DNA from: Andalucia godoyi And28
Taxonomy: Eukaryota; Protista; Jakobida
Direction: 5' to 3'
Assembly (NCBI GenBank): GCA_009859145.1
Contig: VRVR01000043.1
Span: forward strand, 191,185-255,184
Length of the DNA stretch: 64,000 bases
Both the position numbers and the translations under genes were made by a program. Below are positions 5,531 to 64,000 of the stretch, one piece after another. The notes beneath the pieces were generated by a model, which saw nothing but the letters and a program-made list of their open reading frames with translations, searched no databases and was not told the DNA's origin. The number at the start of each line of letters is the position of its first letter. The stretch's first letter is position 1.

Positions 5531-8500
5531 TTATTCGGGATTCAATGGCTTCCGGCGATGCATGATGATCTTCCTCAATGTTGTAAAGATCATCGCTGCA
5601 ACAGTAATCAGACCCACCAGCACATTGACACACACGGCTCCCGCTTGCGCGATCGAAATAATGTAGATGGTCGTCTCCATCTGTGCCGAGGTTCGGCCTA
5701 GATAGGCCACTGGGAATGTCGCCATGAGCGTTCCAAGGTCAAAAATCGAGTTGAAGAAGAAGAGATACTTATCAGTGGCATCGTGAAAAGGCTTCTTCAC
5801 GGCAGCGAGCCCTATGCGCAAGAAGTCAACAAGACAGACGAGAGACAGCTGGAGAACAGGGTCGATGGCACAATAGTCACCGACGACCACAATGCAGGCA
5901 TCCAGGAGTGTGCACAAGATCATCCATGCATCGAACCACAATGCATGCGACGCATACGGCTCAAAATACAGCGCGGTGAAGGAAACCCGTTTTTGACACT
6001 GCTCTGCCGTCGTTGTCGTTACATCGCTGCTGGATTTGGCGGCCTGCATCCGATGCCAGACAGGCATGGCAATCAAGAAGCCAATCAGCGCTGCAGCAAG
6101 GCACACCAAGCTCAAAAACGACTGAAATACGGCAGACGTGTTGAACAGCAGTTGCACAAGTCCAGTGACAAAGAGTGGAAAGAGAACAGCGGTCAGCATG
6201 CTCAGTGTGATCATGTACAGTAGTCGGTACATGAACCCCAGCACAAGTGCTCTTCGTCGCGAGCCCTCCGATGATGTCTTGTTGCTGCCATCGGGAGGAG
6301 CAGCAGTAGCGGTGGTAGTAGCAGCAGCAGTTGTCGTTGTTGCGGTTGGGGTATTACCGTGTTCACTCTTGGGCATGCTCCCCATCGCACAGTCGTCTCG
6401 CACAATGAACGATGATTCATATGACATCGTGGAAGAAAGCGATGTCGGCTCGTCAAATCGGAGCCTGTCTATGATGTCTCCATTTCCATCACGACCACTA
6501 GTGTGATCAGTGTCGTCCGTCAGCTCACAGACTGCATATGGATTATCATGAAATGTGACCCGCGAGCGCTCTTTGAGAAACCCCCGCTTTGCAAAAAGCC
6601 TTCCTTTCTGCGTCTGAGCGTTTGCAATCTCTTCCAGCACCGCAGATAGCCGTTTCATGTCAGCTGGAGAAATGCCAGAGCTCGTTCGAGATCGTGGGGG
6701 TTGAGTTTGGGGTTGAGTCTGAGTTTGGGATTGAGATTGAGAGTCTATGGAGCCCGAGTCGGCGCTGCCCTGATTCAGAGGAGAAAGCCTCGGAGTGCAT
6801 CCACCTTGTCGAGCGACGCTAGGGGACGCAGGTGGAAATTGTGTGGCAAAGAGCTGAGATGGAGACTGAAGATAAGCGCCTGGAAGCTTCGACGACGCAC
6901 CATCAAGGATCATCGGCGGAAGACGGTTTCTCGTACGTACGCCAATGAGCGGGGAGTCCGAGACGTGATCGAAAGACTCCGTCCGCACATCAACCAGTAG
7001 TCCTGGGCGAATCGCGGACGCCTCGCGATGCAGGGTCCGTTGCATTGGCGTCTGATCCTCAAGATCACCTGGTGCATTTTCGACTGGAGTGCTCGATTCG
7101 ATAGGTGATCTGGAGTGCATTAAAGGCGTAACAGAGGTCGACTTTCGCCCGAACGTCGCGCCTAATCGTAAGAAGCTCCTGAGCTTGGTTCGAAGGAACG
7201 ACTGCCGGCGAGCGAGTTCTTTCACCAAGAATCCCTGAATGATGCGCATGATGAGAAACAAATTGAAAATAACAAACATCGAGAACATAAACGCAAGGAA
7301 CAGCGATTCAAACGACTCGCTAAAGGTTCCATGCGCGTTCTTCAAGAAGATCTTCAGGCTGGAATCCGTTTCGTAGTCCACTTCCTGTGTTGCATATCCA
7401 ATTGGATCCCCGACGTCTCGGAGGAATCCGATTTGGAAACCAAACAAGATCACGCTGAATCCTTGGACAAACACCTCGATGTACCACAGCGGAAACTCCA
7501 CTCGCAGACATGCAAAACGAACAAGGTTTTGAATTGCGTCCAGGACTTGCAGCGACGAGCCGGATGCAGAGGACGACGCTACGGCTGACGATGCGGCAGC
7601 TCCCGAAACCGCTTGCGATGCATCTCCGTAGGAATCTCCGCCCACGGGAGGCAGCTTATCCGGGATAGTTGGAGGAGGCGCAGGAAGCGGAGGAGGAGAG
7701 GGAGTTCCCTGCGGAGGATCACAGGACGGTAGCGTCGCATTGTCGTTGTTGCACACATCACACGCTTCTCCCTTGAATCGTGGGTCGCATACACACAGGC
7801 CCAGAGGCGAACAGTAGCCGTGCCCGGAGCACGTCGTATTCGACTGGCAGAATCTTGAACACTGACTCACGCCATCACTGTTGTTCATAGAGGATACTTG
7901 TGGAAACAGATTAGCCCGACACACGTTGCATTGGCTGCCGGTAAAATTCAAAGAGCACTTGCACGAGCCATTCAGGTTGCAGATCCCGTGACCTGAGCAA
8001 TTGCTGACGGGATCACAGTATACATTGCAAATCCCACTCGGGTAGCGATTTGAAAGACACGCAGTGCAGTTCGACGACCGAGCGGAAGTGGCCGTACCAA
8101 AGCCTTCTGGGCACGCGATGCATGTGAAATCCGTTTCAATTCCATTTGAATACGTGTTCACAGGACACTCAATGCATCTACTCTGGTCGTCACTCGGAGC
8201 AGTGCCGGGTTCGCACAGATGACACTGTGGCAGCGTCTGATTCGATATCGAGCCCAGTCGACATTTTACGCACGACGTCCTGTTCACGTTCGGTTCAAAG
8301 CCATCGGAACAAGAAACGCACCCTCCCACCATGGTCTCATTTCTCACCTTTCCAGATTCGCAAGCAGCACATCCGTCTCCCTGGCTGGAAATCTCCGTTC
8401 CAGCAGGGCATTGCAGACACAGACCTTTGAGATTCAAGTCCGAGCCGTTGTAGTAGTACGAATGTTCTGCACAGGGCACACAAAACGACTGGTTCAACGA

Positions 8501-11500
8501 CGGTTCAAATCCAAATGAGCAGAACGTACAGTTGAATTGCGTTGATGCATTTGAATAAGTGTTGGTCGAGCAGCGAACGCACGAACCATTCGGCGCATGT
8601 CCAAAGCCGGAGTTGCACAAAACAGCAGCAGCAGGAACACTGCAATTCGAAGCACTACAGTTTTGCAGCGCCTCCGTTGCACTGGTAATGTTGCACGCAC
8701 TACGATCTTCAATGCTTGACCAACCATCGGGGCAACGAGCACACAAGAATCCAGTGGAGGTATTCGAATAGAATCCTTGCGCGCACGCCATGCATCGAGA
8801 TTGGTTGGCGGACGGCTGCTGTCCAGGTCCGCAGACACTGCAAATGAACGACGTAGAAGAGTTCGAATACGACCCGGCTGGGCAGGACACGCAGTCTGCT
8901 CGCTCCATATTTGGTTCCGTACCAGAAGCGCAAGGAGCACATGACCCGTTCGACTGTGTGTGGCCAAGAGCTGAAAACCTCCCAAGGGGGCATGCTACGC
9001 ACGATGTTGAGTACAAGGGCATGAATCCTGCTGGACAAAACGAACAAATGGGCACTGTTTCATTGGAAAACATGTTATCAGAACAAGAAACGCAAGCATC
9101 GTTCACGAGTTCTTTGCCAGCAGGACACCGGCTGCAAAGGATTGACGACAAGTTGAAGAATTCATGAGCACCGCAAACAACGGGAACACAGCGGGCACGA
9201 TCTTCCGTGGCCAGGCTTCCGGGTTCACAAACGGCGCACACGTATCGGGATGACGCATTTGAGAATGAATTACCATCACATCTTTCGCACACGGATCTAT
9301 CTGCCGACGACTCGTGTCCATCTGGACAAGAAATGCAAAGGCCATTTGTGGATGAATTGGAGTACGATTCTCGCCCACAGAGAACACAAGCACTGTTGTC
9401 AGGCATAGGTTGGTGCCCCGTCGGACACTGAAGGCAAGAAAACGACGTGGTCGAATTGGAGTACATATTCGATGCACACGCGATGCAAGAACTTTGATTC
9501 TCGGAGGGCTCATATCCAGCAGAGCAGTAGTCGCAAACACCATTTGCAGAATCGTTAGAAAACATGCCTCTTGGACAACGTATGCAGTATGACCTGTCCA
9601 ATTCGGGATAAAGGCCCGGTGGACATCCCAAACAGACGAAACTGGTCGACGCATTGGAGTACATGTTGAGTGGGCAGACGGCACACGATGTGCGGTCGTC
9701 GCTCGGCTGGTTCCCCGGAGGGCATGCTGTGCAGACACCAGACGTTGATGCATTGGAGTACATGTTGAGTGGGCAGACGGCACACGATGTGCGGTCGTCG
9801 CTCGGCTGGTTCCCCGGAGGGCATGCTGCGCAGACACCAGACGTTGATGCGTTGGAGTACATGTTGAGTGGGCACACGGCACACGATGTGCGGTCGTCGC
9901 TCGGCTGGTTCCCTGGAGGGCATGCTGCGCAGACACCAGACGTTGATGCGTTGGAGTACATGTTGAGTGGGCACACGGCACACGATGTGCGGTCGTCGCT
10001 CGGCTGGTTCCCCGGAGGGCATGCTGTGCAGACACCAGACGTTGATGCGTTGGAGTACAGTGGTGAGTGGGCACACGGCACACGATGTGCGGTCGTCGCT
10101 CGGCTGGTTCCCCGGAGGGCATGCTGTGCAGACACCAGACGTTGATGCGTTGGAGTACATGTTGAGTGGGCACACGGCACACGATGTGCGGTCGTCGCTC
10201 GGCTGGTTCCCCGGAGGGCATGCTGCGCAGACACCAGACGTTGATGCATTGGAGTACATGTTGAGTGGGCACACGGCACACGATGTGCGGTCGTCGCTCG
10301 GCTGGTTCCCCGGAGGGCATGCCGTGCAAATAAAACTGGTAGATATATTCGAGAATAAATTGCTTGGGCACGGTTCGCAGAATTGCTGACTGGAGCTAGG
10401 CTGAAAGCCAGAGTCGCACAATGCGCATCGATTCATTGTGGACGAATTGGAGAATTGATTGGACGGACATGAGACGCAAGAGGATGCTCCAGCGGAGGGC
10501 TCTAAACCATCTTCACAGGTCATGCAAATGCCGCTGCTAAGGACAGAATTGGAAAAACGTCCAGAGGGACAAGTCGAGCACGAAGATCGGTCTGCAGTAG
10601 GCTCTGAGCCGTTGACGCAGTATGTACAGACAAAGCCAGTGGAAGCATTGGAGTACTTGCCCAGTGCGCATTGCAAGCATGCTTCGACGGGAAAGAAAGA
10701 GACGGTTGACCCGGACGGACAGTCGTTGCTGCAGTCTCCTGTTGGATACCTGGCCAAACTGCACAGCGAGCAGTCGTTTGCTCCAGAGTGATTTGGATCG
10801 CACACACATTGTCCTGAGGCATTGCAAACACCGTGCGAGGAGCAGCTAATCTGTGCATCGCAGAACACATCGCATGATGCGCCATAGTAGTGATTCGAAC
10901 ACTGGGAGCAGTTCGCTCCCGCATATCGAGCTGGGCACGTAACCGAGACGACTTTGGTGTCGATGCTGACACCTGTAGGAAACCATTGGATTTGCGACCC
11001 CGATACGGCACGAGCAGACAGCGATGCCGTTCCTTGGCTGAGCCCCAATACCGGCACACTAGCAACCTTGTTTGTATTACTGATTGTCACAGATGGCACC
11101 TGAAACGTCGCCACTGTTGAATTCGACGATGCAAGCGAGAGAACAACCGTGCACGGAGCGAACTCGACAGAGCACGGAGACCGATACAGGGATATTTCGA
11201 CAGTGTATACAGATGCCTGGCCAGAAAGAGAGAGCACTCCTGCATTCACCGTCATGCTGATGATGTTTGTGACTGTGAGTTGGAGCACAGGTCGCAGCGA
11301 CGCAGATGCCAGCGGACTCCAGATAGACGCTGTGGTACTGCTCGCCGAGTGTATCCTCAATCCAAAATTGCGATTCGCAGATACAGTCCAGAACATTGCG
11401 GACGGCGTAATGTCCACAGTGATTGGAATGTTTGCAGTAGGAGACCCCGGAAACGCAGGAAGATTTCCCGGCAAAGCAGTGGCGGAAGGCTGGTTTGACC

Positions 11501-11888
11501 ACGTTATGCTTGACGAAGTCCAGCTCGATGTTACGTTGTACAACGTAAACGGCCCACCGCTGTTGTTTTCAAACGTAAAGATGAGCGATGCCGCCACGAT
11601 GTACGACGAGCTTGCAACACACTCAAACACATTTCGTACGCGGAAAACACTCCGAAGCTCGCTTATCAGCAGCGCACTGTCTCGCGCCTGCATCCTCGTC
11701 GTAATCGTGCTGCTCGACAGCAGCCCGTCGTCCACCTGCGCAAAGTCCATCGCAGATTGATCCAGCGGGAACTGGACCGTCGTCGTCGACTGAGCTCTTA
11801 CGCAGTCATGCATCAGCACCAGCAGTAGTACAGTGCACACAACACCGCAGCACCCAGTGCGGCTGTTCCGCTTCATTATCGCCACCAT
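5531..11888 (-). CDS. Large Cys-rich multipass receptor-like protein (signal peptide, DNRLRE-like domain, EGF and furin/GCC2-GCC3-like repeats, Pro-rich stalk, TM bundle), split by a 1-nt frameshift near 10060
   Basis: ORFs 9555..11918 and 5531..10279 are two halves of one gene that switch frame inside the 99-bp array. First ATG 11888 precedes a hydrophobic signal. WTSSSITWSNQP..NFGLRI..RPVLQL is DNRLRE-like. Many CxxCPxG and CSGHGxC repeats occur, and several C-terminal TM helices flank a long Ser/Gln-rich loop. Confidence 0.8.
9651..10326 (-). repeat. Near-identical 99-bp (33-aa) tandem array, about 7 units
   Basis: Units start at 9651, 9750, 9849, 9948, 10047, 10147 and 10246 and encode CPPGNQPSDDRTSCAVCPLNMYSNASTSGVC(T/A)A. 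The unit at 10047 is 100 bp. Confidence 0.95.
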
Positions 11889-12633
11889 TATTCCATGGCC
11901 TTCGACTTTCTCGTTCACTTTTTTTCACTTCTTTTCCTTCTTCTTCCTCTTCTTTAGTGGATGAACGTGGTTTTTGGAGTCTGCGGGTTGTGCAACCCCG
12001 GGGTTCCCGAGTCCAGTCTGTTCTCAACTAGAAAGAATGAGGACCCAACAGTCAACACCTAACAGCGAATGCCGCGTCTGACTGCATCTCCACACCCACT
12101 GTGCCCGTGCAGTCGCTCACCAACAACACGTCCGACGATGCAGACCTGGTTTCCCTCGCTTACGACGCTCGAAGCATTCCGTCAGCACTTTGCCTGGACG
12201 TCGGTGGACAAGCGATGCGACGGACTGACGACTATGTTTTGCAAAGTTTCCTCATTTCAGCATTCTTGTTTCAGCAGCAACCTCCGCTTTGCTCGGACGC
12301 ACACTTGAAAAAGCACCTTACGGTAGGAATGACAACGGAGGAATGACAAATGACAACGGAAGAATGACAAATTGATGGAGGAGTGCTTTGTATTCTGCAA
12401 TAGCATTTTGAAAAAACCCTGGGCGCACTTCGGGATAACTAACCCCCTGCTGCTGCAAATCAAACCAATGCAATGCACACTGGAGCGACCATGGACTTTT
12501 CAAGCGGTTTTCCCCCTCCATTTTCAATTATACGGATTCTTGGTACAATTCAACACTTATTATTATTATTAGAGCGTCGAATTCTGATTTGCTGTTATTA
12601 TTATTATTTAAATTTAGATTTGATTGTGGAATA

Positions 12634-14350: not shown

Positions 14351-14379
14351 GAAAGAGAGAGGGGAGAGAGGGGAGAGAG

Positions 14380-14459
<80 letters not shown>
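14351..14459 (+). repeat. (GA)n purine microsatellite abutting the start codon of the BTB gene
   Basis: GA/GGGGA run ending immediately before ATG 14460. Confidence 0.95.
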
Positions 14460-24905: not shown

Positions 24906-25011
24906 AAAAATATAGTTAATAAAATAAATAATAATTAGTTTAAAATTAAAATAAAAAACCGAAAAGAACAGAAAGATTAAAAGTACCCGTTGGATTAGAT
25001 CAACAGACTTG

Positions 25012-25195
25012 CGCCTACATTGCACACGAACCCCGGATAATCATCGCTGATCACCCATAATCAATGTTGCAACCCAGCAACATGCATAATGCAACGCGGC
25101 GGCGTGTTTATAGGGATGTCATGATCAAAATGGGGGCGAAACGAATCAGGCATCGTGTGACGGAGTTGCTGAAGCAATAAGTGGCAACGGTGAGA
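25012..25195 (-). mobile_element. Probable internally deleted mini-copy of the Fanzor-associated element
   Basis: Minus strand begins TCTCACCGTTG (compare TCTCACC..GAACCGTTG at 35239) and ends GTTCGTGTGCAATGTAGGCG. It shares CAATGTAGGCG exactly, and GCATTATGYATG and GTGATCA, with the tail at 60407-60460. Confidence 0.55.
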
Positions 25196-34822: not shown

Positions 34823-35251
34823 GATTATTGGGCGTCTACGTTATACACTGAACATGCATATATATATATGAATAGACATGCATACTCAGTCTTGCATCCC
34901 GATGCCGGGAAGGGGATAGGCCCCAACACGCCTCACGGCGTTCTTCAGATAAATGTTCCGCGCTCCGTTCCCATTCTCAATCAATCTGTGAGCCACTTTC
35001 TCAGCGTGACACATTACTCCTGAGAAGAGTGCATTTTGATTCTGACGGCCCTAGCAGCAGGCGTAGTGACACATGGTCTCTTAGTAGGTCTGCGGGACCT
35101 AGGAGGCCCTGTATCACGAATTCTTGTGAAACAAGCGTGCTAGTGTCGGCCAGTATTGACGGTGTCTGTTTATGTATACTTCCGTTTATGCATGACAATG
35201 ACGTGTTATTAATCAACGGTTCAGGACACTCTGGTGAGAGATTATTGGGCG
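34823..35251 (-). mobile_element. Non-autonomous Fanzor-derived element (34835..35239) flanked by a 12-bp direct repeat
   Basis: GATTATTGGGCG occurs at 34823-34834 and 35240-35251. The minus strand of 34940-34969 encodes NGARNIYLKN (RuvC-III motif) and is homologous to 60490-60580. Confidence 0.8.

Positions 35252-47004: not shown

Positions 47005-47077
<73 letters not shown>
47005..47077 (+). repeat. (GA)n microsatellite
   Basis: Perfect dinucleotide run about 110 bp upstream of the minus-strand gene at 46897. Confidence 0.95.
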
Positions 47078-58500: not shown

Positions 58501-60197
58501 AACTCAACCTGGAGGAGAACAAGTTGACGAAGATAGAGGGACTTGAACGGTGTGTGCGCTTGCGGAAGTTGGAATTGGGCAAGAACAGAATTGCCAGAAT
58601 TGAAGGTGTCTCGCATTTGAAGGATCTCACGCTGCTGTCCATCGAGGACAATGATTTGTTGAGTTTACAAGGTGGCCAAATGCTGTTGTCGTTGATGGAA
58701 TTTTATGCGGGGAACAATAAGATTGTTTCTAGTCGTGAAGTGAACATTCTGAAAGACCTGCCCAAGTTGATCATTCTGGATCTGTCTGGCAACCAAATGT
58801 GCAAGGCCGACGAAGACTACCGTCTGTACGCTATTTACTGCCTTCGCAAGTTGAAAGTTCTGGATGGCGTATCAATCGATGGAAACGAGTCTCAAAGGGC
58901 CAAAGAGATGTTTGCGGGTCGCCTGTCGACAGAGACATTGGTGGAGCGACTTGGACATGCGAACTTTGGGCAAGTTTTGGAATTGAATTTATCTTCCTGT
59001 GGAATTCGTGATGGTCTATCAATGCTTGAAGACTTTGCAGCACTTCGAGAATTGGTTCTCGACGGCAACCTAGTTTCGGACATTGAGCCCATCTCAAAAC
59101 TCCGTGGACTGCAAGTCCTACGGCTTTCCAGGAATCGCATTGAAATGTCCAATGCGTCATATGCCGCTGGAAGAGGACATGTTGGGAAATATCTAGAGCA
59201 GCTATCCGCCCTTGAAGTGCTGGACTTGTCGTACAATGCAATCTCCTTCATTCCCGGACTGCATCTGCATCGTTTGTCTCGTCTGAAATCCTTGATTCTG
59301 AGTGGTAACGAAATAGTGAAAATAGAAGGGTTGGAAAACTTGGTGCAGCTTCGAGAGTTGTATCTGGATAAGAACAAGATCCGGCAGGTCGATGGGTCCT
59401 CCTTCGCCTCGCTCGTCAATCTTCGCGAGCTGCGTTTGGAGGAGAATGCGCTGAAGCAGCTGGATAACTTCCGCCCCTTGTCTCGTCTACAGTCACTTCA
59501 TTTGTCTTGCAATCGGATTATGGAGTTGTCCGAGCTGGATAAGCTTGTTGAGCTTCGATCTTTGTTGGAGATTTTACTCGTCTTCAATCCAGTGGCGAGG
59601 AAGCCGATGTATCGACCACATCTGCTGCGGAGAGTCCCTTCTCTGCAGATGATTGATGGAAAGGAAGTTACGTTTGATGAGCGCGAGCGTGCTGATGCAC
59701 TGTATTCTGCGCAGGAGTACAATGCAGCAGTGGCCAGTGCAGCGCAGTATGGGGGGCCTTCGAGCCAAATGCCCATCGACCGCACAGCCATCCAGGCGAC
59801 GCAGCCACCTCCTCAATCCGGTATGTACGCGGCCCTCGCTTCGGGAAACAACACGTACATCCTGCCAACTGGTGGTGGTCCCGGTTCGCTGACTTCTGCA
59901 AGTGCTGCTGGATCCAAAAATGTCAAATTGGCGTCCATGGCTCCGTTTGAGATGGCCGGCATGTCCTCGTCCAATCCTGCATCCATCATTCCGGCTGGTG
60001 TAGGGACGTATCGGTTGCAGCAATCATCGAACCAGAGAGTTGGTAGTGCAGAGAGTTCTCGGCCGTTGGAGATCCAGTATGCTCCTCCTCCCGCGCACCA
60101 GTATGCAACATCCAATACACAGGGTAATGTTTTGGTTGTTCGACGAGCGAAGAGCAACAGTCGCGGTACCCGCGAGGGATCGTTCAAGAAACGGTGA
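55506..60197 (+). CDS. LRRC9: Leucine-rich repeat-containing protein 9
   Basis: LEMFMYNYPRMSGL.., NPICKLGNYQTFTLYHLP, ADATFVKKKMYYNMRIKT and ELESGGNVRLEEG match LRRC9, followed by many SDS22-type LRRs. Likely ATG 55506. Confidence 0.9.
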   Translation: MTEVYTEDDKRKATEGVNNPIVAELLESNGISKESFVAGKRKKHLEMFMYNYPRMSGLQFFDGLSSLSIIQQDVEVIENLNRCTQLEKLWLCECRIKAIQGLDGCISLKELYLYSNNISKIQNLSNLKQLEVLWLNENRISVIEGLDSLRALRVLWLSKNHISQIGTSLDNNENLEELDLSCNNIGNFKDVPNLQRLARLRTVFFSNPIFGDNPICKLGNYQTFTLYHLPQISMLDACPVSEEARHLADATFVKKKMYYNMRIKTMKRNAAVVQRLVSQKRTQISSEISASLHSLLLEKAFRLKDYVELRGPAALGVFSAVENLDDLADVDGDPCEVKADDAESVAVFNTIVAGIRFRTRQLRDLDASIEFFKERVAEASSLNYHRLMVELESGGNVRLEEGRPKDIWFTSCVDLVRSRFFSSDYADPTLGVRGIRVSRVCRIHNRFLRNRFEGKLEQLVDTSDMSYKKSLEYLFVGENPADRNELLRFAEDGVDARSPEDDSIVLTNSVSLADFRRVSSRKFSRHKEFRLGSLLICKVYSGSKYGTEEVRFSNPYLASAGRPDRPFSSATFGLSPLSKSGDACSFCRIQSDDSKQKLWYLFDDSLVLPEYLVFFEYVVEGIPQTDGRPVPSVEDEQNRTSLDVFVSDVASLPSSSMPVSVTEQDSLDLCTYTSAYVHFTARCTEIALSPEAMGQQERIGPIVRHAESKRKSADSLDVDSSFILRFSSFLRVSTLAALTYLNLSACGLKRFDVVSDIPNLEILVLAFNELPKMDAFFGLKRLVHLDLSGNLLKRIEGLEGLSQLQNLLLQNNLIYRLEDVNILKRNIPDVIHLNLRGNAICDVKNYRSIILRRLVHLKSLDGLPVTSEERTSAGERPSSITWEVLIQHARTRGPLGWSFLGKIESPDSLLPVSHQAFASDAAAQDEDDGVSGNGPSQSLLSPTILDLSCLEKVQVLELPHMRIRKIVNLDRLIQLRRLNLCDNELSRIEGLETNLSLQELNLEENKLTKIEGLERCVRLRKLELGKNRIARIEGVSHLKDLTLLSIEDNDLLSLQGGQMLLSLMEFYAGNNKIVSSREVNILKDLPKLIILDLSGNQMCKADEDYRLYAIYCLRKLKVLDGVSIDGNESQRAKEMFAGRLSTETLVERLGHANFGQVLELNLSSCGIRDGLSMLEDFAALRELVLDGNLVSDIEPISKLRGLQVLRLSRNRIEMSNASYAAGRGHVGKYLEQLSALEVLDLSYNAISFIPGLHLHRLSRLKSLILSGNEIVKIEGLENLVQLRELYLDKNKIRQVDGSSFASLVNLRELRLEENALKQLDNFRPLSRLQSLHLSCNRIMELSELDKLVELRSLLEILLVFNPVARKPMYRPHLLRRVPSLQMIDGKEVTFDERERADALYSAQEYNAAVASAAQYGGPSSQMPIDRTAIQATQPPPQSGMYAALASGNNTYILPTGGGPGSLTSASAAGSKNVKLASMAPFEMAGMSSSNPASIIPAGVGTYRLQQSSNQRVGSAESSRPLEIQYAPPPAHQYATSNTQGNVLVVRRAKSNSRGTREGSFKKR

Positions 60198-60408
60198 ATA
60201 AGGTAGATTCGCTTGAGCTTCTGTTTGTCGCCAATGTTTTCATCGATTCTTTAGCAATCGTCGCCATTATGCGCAAAGTGGAAAGCACAGAGTTTATAAC
60301 GTTTTTTTACCTTGTCCGCAGCAAGCGACCTCGGGGAGATCGCAGTGTTACTTGGCTTGATAAATTTTATGCGGATCCCGTCTGTCGTTTGCCGTCGTTT
60401 ACGCAACG

Positions 60409-61360
60409 CCTACATTGTGAACTAGCCATTCATGATCACTCTTAACCATACATAATGCGTCTTATATCAAATTTGGATTCACACTCGATTCCGAAGGGGG
60501 TAGACCCCAACACGCCTTGCCGCCGTTCTTGAGATAAATGTTGTTGCGCGCACCCATTCCCCAATCGCGATCAATCCGGAATGCACACTGTGGACATGCA
60601 AACACCCTCCAATGCGGCGCTTTTCCCTTTCTGCAGGCTCCCTCCGCACTATACGAAACGGGGTCGAATTTCGGAAGGACGACAGTGTCTTACTCCCTCA
60701 CACAGCCATTTTGCAAGCTTGCGATGCATGTCTGTCGTCAGGCTGCGGATCTGCTGATGCATTTGCAAACACAGGCCTCTTGTCAAGTGGGATTTGGTTC
60801 TTGTCCCGCACGCCGCTCAGCTGTGGAATGCACCCGGTGCGGACGGCCCAGCGTCAGAGGGATTGCCGCGAAAATGTCATACGTCTCACGTAGCTTGGCA
60901 GGTGGTCACTTACATTCGAATCGCGTGGCAAACACAAAAAATGCAAAACAAAAGGGGGTTGCTGCTTTAAAATGGTGTCCCAGAAAATTAGTGTCTGAAC
61001 AATTCGGTTAAACGAGCAAACCCGGATGTCTCATTTTCGCTTGCGGACTGCTGCTTGCGTACGTTCATGCACGTCGCTTGTGTTTGCCGTCTTTCGCGAG
61101 CGGCATCAATTGATTCACGCTCTACTTGGGTGGGTGCAATGCACTCCGCCAGCCGAATCCAAACTTGGAACTGCTGCAGCTGGATTGATGCCATTTTTGG
61201 GCGGAGCCGGGTTTGTCGGGAAGCGGAGGCTGCTCGTGTGTTGACAGCTCCGTTGAACAACATTTGTGTGCTTGCGAATCACCAATGAACAACATCGACA
61301 CTCACAATTCTTTAATGGACGCTTTGTGTGTTTGTTGATCAAACGACGTTCCACGGAGCT
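60409..61360 (-). pseudogene. Decayed Fanzor2/TnpB-like RNA-guided nuclease element
   Basis: Stitched minus-strand frames: LDAG/VRT (60855-60835, RuvC-I DPGVRT-like); LQMHQQIRSLTTDMHRKLAKWLCE / DTVVLPKFD (60765-60660); RVFACPQCAFRIDRDWGMGARNNIYLKN (60608-60525, Zn ribbon plus RuvC-III). Frameshifts, stops and deletions are present, and the left boundary is approximate. Confidence 0.85.
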
Positions 61361-61386: not shown

Positions 61387-62694
61387 ATGAATCAGCCATT
61401 GCTAGAAGCGCAGCCCGTGGAACAGCGAGTTTTGGTCCGTCATCGGACAGCATCCTTGCTGGCCAAGCTTCGCAAGTCTGTTGTGCTGCGGTATGACGGC
61501 CAGGAGAAAAACCGGTTGTCTGCCGTAGCAGTGGATCGAAAGCTGCGATATCTGAATGTGATCATTACATTCTTTGCGACTTTGGGAATTTTGCTGATGA
61601 TATCCTTCGTTGAACTGGACTGGAATTCAGATCAGCAAGAGTATGTATTGTCTCCCACTGGCCTGTTTCTAAAGGTTGTGAATGTCGTCGTAGCGTGGAT
61701 ATGTGCAGTTCTGTTATTTTATTATTATGCATTTCGATCGCAAATTCAGCAAACGCAGTGGTCGTTTGGATCTCGGCTTCAGGCGATCTGGCATTCGTCG
61801 CTACGATGGAAGTTTCTCATGGAGCTTCTGGCGGTGTTGATTGTTCCCATTCCGTTTACAACGATGGATGATCCATTTCAGATTGAGTGCGCAGGTATCA
61901 TGTTTGCCAGGTTGTATTTGTGGGTCAGAGCCGTGCGTGATTTTAGTACAATTTATGTGCTGCGACATCTTATCCGGGCGTCGAATGATTTCTTTCGACG
62001 ATTTCGGCCAAAGATTGGCATTCGTCGTTCGTTCAAAGTGCTTTTTTATGAACGAACAATTTTTGTGTCGATTGTTTTTCTTTGTTTTTCGCTTCTGATT
62101 TCAGCTTTTATCATCTACACAGCAGAACGCGGAGAGCCTCACACGAATTTCGACTCGTATATTACCGCCATATGGTACACTTGGGCTGCAGCGTCAAGCA
62201 CCGGCTATGGTGATGTAGTCCCCACGACTACGTATGGTCGTATTATTGGGATCTTGCAAGGTGCACTGGGAATTGTCACGATTGCTGTTTTAGGCGGTGT
62301 CATCACCAACAAGCTGTCTCCGACTCGGAATGATAACTATGCGATGCATTTCGTCAAAGCACGTAGCGTGCGCAAAAAACAGGGCTACTGGGCAGCGGTT
62401 TTGATACAGACAATATGGAGAACGAAAACGAAACGGATCAGCCCGGCAGCAGCAGCAGCCCTCATCAAAACTGCTAGAAAACAGCTGAAGCGCGTGAAGC
62501 TATTTAATACTCTCCACGGTAAGGGAGAGACCGCAGCATTTGGTGCTCATGCAAATGACGATAGCTGCTCCTCAGAGGAGATCTTGGATGCTGTTGTCAT
62601 GATCCAGAAAAGCATCACTGCCTTGAAGAAAGAAGTCCGTGAGCTCCGAAGCGTTGTTGCCACCAAGTCCGCGGGAAGCAGCGTTGCTATCTAG
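61387..62694 (+). CDS. SK/KCNN-like 6TM potassium channel
   Basis: Six TM segments; S4-like FARLYLWVRAVRDFS; pore WYTWAAASSTGYGDVVPTTTYGR; C-terminal AAVLIQTIWR calmodulin-binding-like motif and coiled coil. Confidence 0.85.
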   Translation: MNQPLLEAQPVEQRVLVRHRTASLLAKLRKSVVLRYDGQEKNRLSAVAVDRKLRYLNVIITFFATLGILLMISFVELDWNSDQQEYVLSPTGLFLKVVNVVVAWICAVLLFYYYAFRSQIQQTQWSFGSRLQAIWHSSLRWKFLMELLAVLIVPIPFTTMDDPFQIECAGIMFARLYLWVRAVRDFSTIYVLRHLIRASNDFFRRFRPKIGIRRSFKVLFYERTIFVSIVFLCFSLLISAFIIYTAERGEPHTNFDSYITAIWYTWAAASSTGYGDVVPTTTYGRIIGILQGALGIVTIAVLGGVITNKLSPTRNDNYAMHFVKARSVRKKQGYWAAVLIQTIWRTKTKRISPAAAAALIKTARKQLKRVKLFNTLHGKGETAAFGAHANDDSCSSEEILDAVVMIQKSITALKKEVRELRSVVATKSAGSSVAI

Positions 62695-63058: not shown

Positions 63059-64000
63059 TCACCCATTCGCGCACGAGTCGCCTTCGTGGCACAGCGCGGT
63101 GCACCGACGGTTGTTCTTGGTGCATGGACGGTGTGAGTTGGAGCATTTCTTTTTCGCTCTCCTACAGTTACAGAAGCGCGGTCCATCGTTTGACAATATT
63201 GGCTCGATACCCGTTGAATGCTTCATCCCAGCTTCGGAGACGGATATCGTTTCCACTGTCTCTTGGCTTTGGTATTTTTGGAACATGGCTCGGAGTTGCG
63301 CATCTTGGTTTGTTCCTTTGGGAGCAAGTGCCACGAGAGCAGAAGACTTCATCGCAGGCTCAACTAGCTTTCCTTCAAAGAGGACCTTGTACGAATCCAT
63401 TGGCTTTCCTGTTCTTCGGTTGCGCATCCGCTCTGCGACAACTCCAGGCTGTCTCACGGGAGCCAGTTTGCTTGCCCCTGGAACATCGAAATACACTGGC
63501 GCTCCCTCTTCGAATGTGATGACAGAGACGACGGTGGGCGCAGGCGGTGCAAATTGCGATTGCTCCGGGGATCCCAAGTCCCGAGGAGATGTGTCGATGA
63601 TCAGGTCGATGGGCGATTCCGAAAGCACCGGTGATTGAAGGCTCAAGTCGACTGTTGCATCAGGAGCAGGATGCTGTGGCGATTTGTTGAGGGTTGCAGC
63701 AAACACGTCGTAGATATCCAAATTCTGTTTACGCAATCTCTGAAAACACATCAGGACAGGAACAGAAGTAAAAAGAAACGGCAAGTGCAAAACACCACAG
63801 CAGCAAACGGGTCCGCAGGACGATTGCCTGGATGTGGAGATGACGGTTTCATTGGCACAAGTGCTTCTGGCTGCACAGTTTCTCGATATGGGTAGAGCGG
63901 GAGCGGAATTAGTGCTGCTGGACATCAGCGAGCTCGTTTGGTGCGATCGGTGAGCTGTACTTTTCAATGTAAAATGTGCTGTCATCCTCAGTTTTTTTGC
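63059..64000 (-). CDS. 5'-truncated ORF resembling the C-terminus of Ginger2/KRBA2-type DDE transposases
   Basis: Frame is open to the window edge. A Cys cluster is followed by SH3-like VYFDVPG..PGVV..YKVLFEGKL, then ETISVSEAG, and terminal CNCRRAKKKCSNSHRPCTKNNRRCTALCHEGDSCAN. Confidence 0.55.
   Translation of the reverse strand, partial: AKKLRMTAHFTLKSTAHRSHQTSSLMSSSTNSAPALPISRNCAARSTCANETVISTSRQSSCGPVCCCGVLHLPFLFTSVPVLMCFQRLRKQNLDIYDVFAATLNKSPQHPAPDATVDLSLQSPVLSESPIDLIIDTSPRDLGSPEQSQFAPPAPTVVSVITFEEGAPVYFDVPGASKLAPVRQPGVVAERMRNRRTGKPMDSYKVLFEGKLVEPAMKSSALVALAPKGTNQDAQLRAMFQKYQSQETVETISVSEAGMKHSTGIEPILSNDGPRFCNCRRAKKKCSNSHRPCTKNNRRCTALCHEGDSCANG

Follow-up and report, generated by a model that had tools for sequence, protein, structure and literature searches.

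A probable decayed remnant of an NlovFz2-like Fanzor2 element in the jakobid Andalucia godoyi

Fanzor nucleases carry a fingerprint found in fewer than 1% of TnpB homologues, comprising a RuvC-I motif of the form DPG and an alternative glutamate that precedes the first CxxC by six residues (Yoon et al., PMC10711439). One of them, NlovFz2, is the Fanzor2 of Naegleria lovaniensis, an omegaRNA-guided nuclease with CCG as its target-adjacent motif (TAM) (Saito et al. 2023, PMC10432273). We have studied a related sequence in the jakobid Andalucia godoyi. The window, by which we mean the whole 64-kb stretch of DNA analyzed, is the terminal part of contig VRVR01000043.1 (assembly GCA_009859145.1, record positions 191185-255184). 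Sequence comparison indicates that positions 60401-60832 of its minus strand are very probably the decayed remnant of a Fanzor2 element. A preliminary description of the window had placed a hidden, dead pseudogene of the Fanzor2/IS607-type TnpB-like kind here, broken by stops and frameshifts. The analysis bears this out, and all the letter strings quoted in that description are present on the minus strand.

Three other kinds of described system are close to this one. Of the solved structures, the nearest to the family of the relic is that of the ApmFz2 or ISvMimi-type Fanzor2 from Acanthamoeba polyphaga mimivirus (L79, PDB 9B0L), which shares the family's architecture of DPG and alternative glutamate. 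The bacterial IS200/IS605 TnpB (ISDra2, PDB 8H1J/8EXA) belongs to the same fold family and has the same order of domains (WED/HTH, RuvC, zinc finger, RuvC-III), and its omegaRNA overlaps the 3′ end of the gene as it does in the family. It differs in that its canonical RuvC-II glutamate belongs to an i-x-i-E-D-L strand, at a position taken by proline in the relic and its family, and in a RuvC-I motif of the form D-hydrophobic-G, where the family has DPG. Lastly, IS607-like ORFB remnants have been known in oomycetes, amoebae and fungi since 2013 (Gilbert and Cordaux, PMC3673617; Bao and Jurka, PMC3627910). These are of the same kind as the Andalucia relic, being scattered, often degraded and species-specific in intron-poor protist genomes, but they occur in host lineages other than jakobids. 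In the literature and supplements open to search, nothing was found that links Fanzor to Andalucia or to jakobids.

The relic was compared with known proteins as a 137-amino-acid pseudo-translation that joins its pieces across the reading frames. A phmmer search of 1.84 billion representative proteins gave 37 matches with an expectation value (E) ≤ 1e-3, the best being 2.3e-8. Of the ten best, two are noise from repeat proteins. The remaining eight are true relatives; all have the Pfam domain Cas12f1-like_TNB (formerly OrfB_Zn_ribbon), accompanied in some by OrfB_IS605 and HTH_OrfB_IS605. The motifs of the relatives occur in the order AIDPGVRTF ... DMHRKxAKWLCExxxVILLPKFE ... EEYTSKTCGxCG ... 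CPxCxxxxDRDWNGARNIYLKN. A word-indexed homolog search with the same peptide gave no match. From 26 of the retrieved proteins we built a family profile, with which the window was searched in full, translated in all six frames. The top two matches both fall in the relic and are in co-linear order, the first at 60816-60652 (E = 4e-9, profile positions 318-352) and the second at 60689-60465 (E = 1e-8, positions 355-365 and 432-458). Profile search of a larger protein collection gave more than 1000 family members. Among the members listed the best scorer against the relic, at 73 bits with the next at 50, was P0223, a 437-amino-acid protein encoded at locus L003 of the Joint Genome Institute (JGI) metagenome 3300042934.

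The relationship is clearly visible in the DNA. The intact L003 gene and the relic at 60606-60493 have 83% nucleotide identity over 114 nt, with E = 1.5e-26. Sensitive local alignment, with which nhmmer agrees, revealed four co-linear segments on the minus strand:

L003 1013-1053, window 60828-60788, minus strand: 71% identity, E = 0.005
L003 1267-1358, window 60756-60664, minus strand: 69% identity, E = 1e-9
L003 1569-1675, window 60606-60493, minus strand: 83% identity, E = 2e-23
L003 1709-1763, window 60456-60402, minus strand: 69% identity, E = 6e-5

A global MAFFT alignment of the two sequences placed the internal deletions wrongly and was discarded. By these comparisons homology is demonstrable over about 430 bp, from 60401 to 60832.

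The anatomy of the relic was deduced from a frameshift-tolerant chain alignment to the profile, together with the L003 DNA segments. The coding blocks that survive are as follows:

60788-60841, minus strand: (V)RTG-CIPQLSGVRDKNQIP, counterpart of RTGxYYLCIPxxxxxRxENQxP, the strand immediately before RuvC-I in the intact proteins
60697-60768, minus strand: long helix LQMHQQIRSLTTDMHRKLAKWLCE, profile positions 318-352, E = 4e-9, 47.7 bits in the chain alignment
60663-60689, minus strand: DTVVLPKFD, profile positions 354-362, 18 bits
60525-60608, minus strand: second CxxC and RuvC-III, RVFACPQCAFRIDRDWGMGARNNIYLKN, profile positions 432-458, E = 1e-8

These blocks are co-linear, running from the pre-RuvC-I strand (CIPQ..DKNQIP) through the helix QIRSLTTDMHRKLAKWLCE and VVLPKFD to CPQC..DRD..ARNNIYLKN. 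The start of the first block is placed at 60841 or 60832 and its end at 60788. It has 60% identity to residues 144-158 of protein P0007, and matches P0014 and P0036 too. In the alignment it scores 18.7 bits at profile positions 246-268, from which the chain jumps to position 330. The jump marks a first deletion of about 180 nt, or some 61 profile positions (269-329; L003 nucleotides ~1054-1254), with its junction within ~60765-60788. This deletion took RuvC-I (ALDPGVRSF), and with it the DPG motif. The sequence ADPQ at 60752-60741 was considered as a remnant of DPG and rejected, being an out-of-frame reading of the well-aligned QQIRS codons.

The helix LQMHQQIRSLTTDMHRKLAKWLCE has 70% identity to P0223 residues 284-306, and is separated by a +1 frameshift from DTVVLPKFD. 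The latter corresponds to the strand that bears the canonical RuvC-II glutamate in ordinary TnpB. When the family is aligned to TnpB, the glutamate position is occupied by proline both in the family (LLPKFE) and in the relic (VVLPKFD), as it is in Fanzors. A second deletion (profile positions ~375-431, junction at ~60608-60663) removed EEYTxKTCGxCG, the E-x6-CxxC segment with the relocated RuvC-II glutamate and the first CxxC; loss of the RuvC-II region had been proposed from the outset. The second CxxC and RuvC-III (DRD..ARNI) are retained as CPQC....DRDWGMGARNNIYLKN at 60608-60525, which takes in the GARN-IYLKN motif described earlier. Block RVFACPQCAFRIDRDWGMGARNNIYLKN matches P0223 residues 388-422 with 62% identity (E = 1e-7). 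It contains two in-frame 3-nt insertions, one of which is the AAC duplication already noticed. The C-terminal tail RRVGVYPL (60559-60494) has been shifted to another frame. Since two of the three catalytic residues have been deleted, this copy cannot be active, and because DPG is missing we classify it as the remnant of a Fanzor2 gene and not as a Fanzor2.

Not all of the reading proposed in the preliminary description can be retained. Two of its three co-linear motif blocks lie far beyond chance, but the third, a DPGVRT-like remnant of RuvC-I, does not stand. The sequence can indeed be read as D-A-G (60855-60847) and V-R-T (60844-60836), but these were misassigned. Their in-frame continuation, G-CIPQLSGVRDKNQIP, has as its counterpart in intact proteins the strand before RuvC-I, and the supposed RuvC-I is therefore out of order. 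VRTG runs in frame into CIPQ, and is the RTG of RTGxYYLCIP. Stitched together as AIDAGVRT the letters score 20 bits as a RuvC-I, but this requires two frameshifts and the result lies 5′ of the block that precedes RuvC-I. An N-terminal helix-turn-helix (HTH; WIRL..PTQVERESI) and a 5′ end at 61360, 25 bp before the initiation codon of the adjacent K+ channel gene, had also been suggested. Both are unsupported, since nothing upstream of 60832 exceeds chance. There, Pfam found no match in three frames, and tblastn with a full-length relative of 582 amino acids gave E > 0.6. Upstream pieces tried and rejected were WIRL..PTQVE, TRLRPKMASIQLQQFQVWI and FVLHFLCLPRDSNVSD, for which the frameshift-tolerant chain score had p = 0.03-0.23 against shuffles and real-sequence nulls.

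Beyond the coding blocks lies a tail corresponding to the predicted omegaRNA region at the 3′ end of the intact element:

60401-60516, minus strand: omegaRNA-homologous 3′ tail (nhmmer, L003 1567-1764 matching 60608-60401, E = 2.9e-21)

Its first letters are GGCGTGTTGGGGTCTACCCCC (60516-60496), and it closes with the right-end motif CAATGTAGGCG (60417-60407). L003 and the relic have in common GGCGTGTTGGGGyCTACCCCC ... AATGTAGGCG, after which each runs into its own flank. Where does the element end? The similarity among three intact metagenomic copies, L003, L029 and L030, ceases exactly after ...GTAAAATGTAGGCG, with different flanks beyond. Every copy examined, that is these three and three relics in the Andalucia window (two of which are described below), stops at GTAGGCG. 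Because all lose similarity at the same point, the right end of the element is defined, and in the relic it lies at 60407. The 3′ limit of 60409 given earlier was thus correctly placed. The would-be guide would lie in the flank from 60406 downward.

Predicted folding of the 3′ regions is summarized below.

Intact L003, last ~206 nt: −76.5 kcal/mol, z = −3.7
Intact L003, terminal 74 nt (long hairpin): −27.4 kcal/mol, z = −5.1
Relic, whole 3′ region (211 nt): −55.1 kcal/mol, z = +1.4
Relic, terminal hairpin: −10.7 kcal/mol, z = +0.7

Evidently the 3′ structure of the relic has decayed, leaving it without a plausible guide scaffold. With its stops, its frameshifts and the collapse of its terminal hairpin, the relic can therefore provide neither a nuclease nor a usable guide RNA. 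No Rfam family matches the 3′ tail, and a search for the omegaRNA motif in IMG/VR gave no match.

The three intact copies lie on different contigs and have 97-99.8% mutual identity:

L003 1-1759: intact element, metagenome 3300042934
L029 336-2124: intact element, metagenome 3300042934
L030 1-1260: intact element, metagenome 3300042922

As the flanks differ after the right end, this family is multi-copy and probably active in its host. Both L003 and L029 contain an open reading frame (ORF) of 582 amino acids with a basic N-terminal extension resembling a nuclear localization signal. The next-closest relatives, L002 (encoding P0007) and L012, have IS607 TnpA directly upstream, as do the more distant L005, L006 and L014, and Pfam confirmed MerR HTH and Resolvase domains in L005 and L014. 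We noted that in L009 (3359-4300 and 3736-4140) the C-terminal fragment of an IS607 TnpA-like ORF overlaps the N-terminal extension of the Fanzor2 in another frame, and that the extension in L003 (246-449) weakly resembles TnpA (E = 0.11). Perhaps the N-terminal extension of the eukaryote type arose on top of a former tnpA.

The relic is not the sole trace of the family in the window. Two further relics lie on the same strand, each in an intergenic spacer:

34832-35103, minus strand: second relic, an internal-deletion derivative (tblastn; nhmmer E = 1e-20)
25011-25076, minus strand: third relic, terminal hairpin and right end only (nhmmer E = 1e-3)

In the second relic the N-terminal HTH region runs directly into the C-terminal sequence NGARNIYLKNAVRRVGAYPLPG, which is followed by the omegaRNA tail and the right end. 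By tblastn it matches P0223 residues 24-59 (47% identity, E = 6e-4, with one stop) and 387-425 (59% identity, E = 1e-8). L003 1610-1680 corresponds to 34974-34904 with 90% nucleotide identity over 71 nt, and the right-end motif is at 34833-34848. In the third relic L003 1696-1758 corresponds to 25074-25012 with 75% identity over 63 nt, and the right-end motif CAATGTAGGCG is at 25012-25022. The terminal hairpins of these two relics are still stable, with z = −2.1 for the second (34832-34905) and −27.5 kcal/mol, z = −3.6 for the third (25007-25080). Across four sequences, 5 of the 24 hairpin pairs have changed on both sides. With three of the four sequences dead this covariation is weak evidence, and the paired changes are most simply explained by an origin from different active subfamilies. 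A search of the window by nhmmer with the whole element found no additional copy. Three relics within 64 kb, together with an intact multi-copy metagenomic relative having 83-90% nucleotide identity to relics, indicate that the Andalucia lineage carried the family. The presence of a Fanzor family in the host, at least in the past, is therefore as originally supposed.

To which family does the relic belong? The fingerprint of DPG and E-x6-CxxC is found in 130 of 142 full-length relatives, P0223 included. Searched against the PDB, the family profile matched the mimivirus Fanzor2 (the "TnpB-like protein L79", 9B0L) with E = 2e-65, compared with 7e-24 for ISDra2 TnpB, and P0223 alone matched 9B0L with E = 3.6e-26. 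Among the profile matches in the PDB with E ≤ 1e-3, which comprise Fanzor2 9b0l, TnpBs and Cas12f/m, nothing is named Fanzor1, a group (SpuFz1, for example) marked by enlarged REC domains and by residence in eukaryotic transposon superfamilies; the HTH_OrfB_IS605 domain and the size of the relatives (440-580 amino acids) are typical of Fanzor2. What would mark a prokaryotic TnpB, namely a canonical glutamate ~50 residues before the zinc finger, D-hydrophobic-G and a prokaryotic host, was not found.

NlovFz2 aligns with the family profile from end to end of the profile (568 bits, E = 7e-175), and has 46% identity to P0223. It resembles the relatives of the relic throughout, in the N-terminal PFW...W...WF extension, the IRLYP HTH region, the YYLCIP..ENQxP strand, ALDPGVRTF, KIRN..DLHKKL..WLC, LLPxFE, E-x6-CxxC and DRDxNGARNI. 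The similarity extends to the RNA. The NlovFz2 omegaRNA opens with ..GTGTTGGGTCTTCCCC (the GTGTTGGGxCxxCCCC hairpin), and the last letters of its scaffold, directly before the guide, are ..AAAGGCG. L003 and the relics share the opening hairpin and the AGGCG end. By sequence, the relic is a remnant of the NlovFz2-like subfamily of Fanzor2. The suggestion that the family might be uncharacterized is thus not sustained, as NlovFz2 of the same subfamily has been characterized biochemically. Their hosts differ, Naegleria being a heterolobosean and Andalucia a jakobid, though both belong to the supergroup Discoba. The Andalucia copy also differs in being dead, having lost RuvC-I, the alternative glutamate, its reading frame and the hairpin.

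The mimivirus protein has ICIGKLN where the family has LLPKFE, and lacks the PFW extension. It lies within an IS607 element with TnpA, as do L002, L012 and L005/L006/L014, whereas the Andalucia relics show no trace of TnpA and L003 and L029 carry the ORF with the N-terminal extension instead of an upstream TnpA. No similarity to IS607 TnpA was found anywhere in the window, and there was no Resolvase match upstream of the relic. Many eukaryotic copies of Fanzor2 lack TnpA, so its absence is no bar to an origin from this family. Among transcriptome data in EukProt we observed a degenerate Fanzor2-like transcript of 190 amino acids (P0017) in another jakobid, Stygiella incarcerata, and two apparently intact family members of 471-474 amino acids (P0029 and P0287) in the amoebozoan Phalansterium solitarium.

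The relic lies in a spacer between two ordinary eukaryotic genes, ~3 kb from the contig end:

LRR-protein gene, plus strand, ends at 60197: leucine-rich repeat (LRR) protein of 1574 amino acids
K+ channel gene, plus strand, starts at 61387: Ion_trans_2 and SK_channel matches

The nuclear genome of A. godoyi is ~20 Mb, compact and intron-poor, and spacers average ~217 nt in one set of closely packed gene pairs (PMC7050145). At 1190 bp, the spacer that holds the relic is far above that average.

These observations can be accounted for by a simple history. An element of Fanzor2, the TnpB-like, omegaRNA-guided nuclease that eukaryotes have from the IS607 lineage, would have inserted into the intergenic spacer between the LRR-protein and K+ channel genes, active at the time and working as its intact relatives do. 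By homology to TnpB and Fanzor2, this intact ancestor would have produced both the nuclease and, from its 3′ end, an omegaRNA, whose guide would have derived from DNA just past the right end and directed cleavage of matching targets beside a TAM. The copy would then have decayed neutrally, with two internal deletions taking RuvC-I and the segment containing the relocated glutamate and first CxxC, while the sequence 5′ of the CIPQ block was probably deleted or altered beyond recognition.

A number of observations weigh against identifying the relic as a Fanzor2 remnant from this lineage. The fingerprint residues, DPG and the alternative glutamate, are absent from the relic itself, so that it is assigned to the family through its homology to proteins possessing these residues. 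The E-values from the family profile are somewhat circular, as the relic was used to collect the members, and part of the CIPQ block was present in the collecting query. The significance of that block is moderate (p ~0.002 against shuffles, ~0.015 against a real-sequence null). Curated profiles applied directly to the relic remain below threshold; the Pfam check proposed in the preliminary description gave PF07282 (OrfB_Zn_ribbon/TNB) at E = 0.004-0.009, although the family profile reached 4e-9 and 1e-8, and NCBIfam gave NF038281 at E = 0.07. Searching the PDB by phmmer with the stitched peptide yielded no relative, just a single spurious match to canavalin. At ≥90% identity, the A. godoyi proteome contains none of the genes neighboring the intact relative. 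Neither the phmmer search nor the comparison of DNA suffers from the profile circularity, and both bear on whether the motif resemblance could be a chance similarity in non-coding DNA. The subthreshold profile scores and the noise-level upstream pieces would fit that explanation. It is refuted, with a likelihood that is negligible, by E = 2.3e-8 in 1.84e9 proteins, 83% identity over 114 nt at E = 1.5e-26, the four co-linear DNA segments and the two further relics.

Could the sequence have come from elsewhere? A remnant of a prokaryotic IS200/IS605 or IS607 TnpB, acquired by direct bacterial transfer or present as assembly contamination, is extremely unlikely. The Pfam domains of the relatives are the generic ones of TnpB, and A. 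godoyi is cultured on bacteria (PMC7050145), but the relic sits within a 255-kb eukaryotic contig between eukaryotic genes, and its proline in VVLPKFD at the canonical glutamate position is Fanzor-like. Moreover the nearest relatives have DPG and the alternative glutamate, their named members are eukaryotic (Naegleria, Lipomyces, Stygiella, Phalansterium), and the family profile scores far better on the mimivirus Fanzor2 than on bacterial TnpBs. Integration of giant-virus (nucleocytoplasmic large DNA virus) DNA that carried a Fanzor2/IS607 element, in place of independent transposon insertion, is very unlikely. Giant viruses are enriched in Fanzor2 (PMC10530073), and relatives at 38-40% identity are found in giant-virus contigs of IMG/VR. 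The A. godoyi assembly omits short scaffolds of subtelomeric origin that abound in transposon and viral-like sequence (PMC7050145), and the relic is near a contig end. Yet three small relics with the same right end lie in three different intergenic spacers among ordinary cellular genes, which indicates independent insertions of the element. No viral genes were seen beside the relics, the omegaRNA motif is missing from IMG/VR, and the closest relatives have eukaryote-type N-terminal extensions like that of NlovFz2. We give equally little credence to the retention of the remnant, or of its 3′ omegaRNA and right-end module, for a function, whether as a non-autonomous element still mobilized in trans, as an independent guide RNA for an active Fanzor located elsewhere in the genome, or as a terminator or regulatory element acting on neighboring genes. 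Such a role would be consistent with the right end kept in all three relics, the stable terminal hairpin in two of them with five pairs changed on both sides, and the second relic, which keeps its N- and C-terminal ends in the manner of a deletion derivative. In the 60401-60832 relic, however, the hairpin has gone, and shuffled sequences fold at least as well as the whole 3′ region; the covariation is weak for the reason given above, and compensatory changes can predate insertion, having arisen in active subfamilies.

The reading that we prefer, a decayed Fanzor2 element, extends the range of Fanzor2 to the jakobids, deep-branching Discoba that have been studied mainly for their bacteria-like mitochondrial genome. 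It also shows that the compact genome of A. godoyi was invaded repeatedly, with three relics in 64 kb. As a dead copy that provides a new host lineage for a known subfamily, the relic is a modest addition and not a new system. The understanding of Fanzors is unchanged, because the family, the mechanism and the presence in Discoba (Naegleria) were already known and the relic is non-functional. The intact multi-copy NlovFz2-like element in the two JGI metagenomes, with its precise right end and structured omegaRNA tail, is a candidate compact nuclease. A bolder proposal is that an NlovFz2-like Fanzor2 family without TnpA is still active in the Andalucia lineage, or was so until recently, with the N-terminal extension in the former place of tnpA, and that this has left right-end/omegaRNA-only derivatives that keep the hairpin (34832-35103 and 25011-25076). 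We regard this as unlikely. If true, the derivatives might act as non-autonomous elements, or as stand-alone guide modules serving, in trans, an intact nuclease encoded elsewhere in the genome.

Some further features of the window were noted. Base 1 corresponds to record position 191185 and base 64000 to the contig end at 255184, where a search for telomere repeats found none. An ORF of 308 amino acids without a Pfam match lies at the extreme contig end (63059-63985, minus strand). A 99-bp unit is repeated 6.8 times with 97% identity at 9654-10328, overlapping long minus-strand ORFs listed at 5531-11918. Long (AG)n microsatellites occur in two intergenic spacers, at 14354-14458 (54 copies) and 47005-47076 (36 copies), and similar CT-rich low-complexity spacers flank the metagenomic element in L029.

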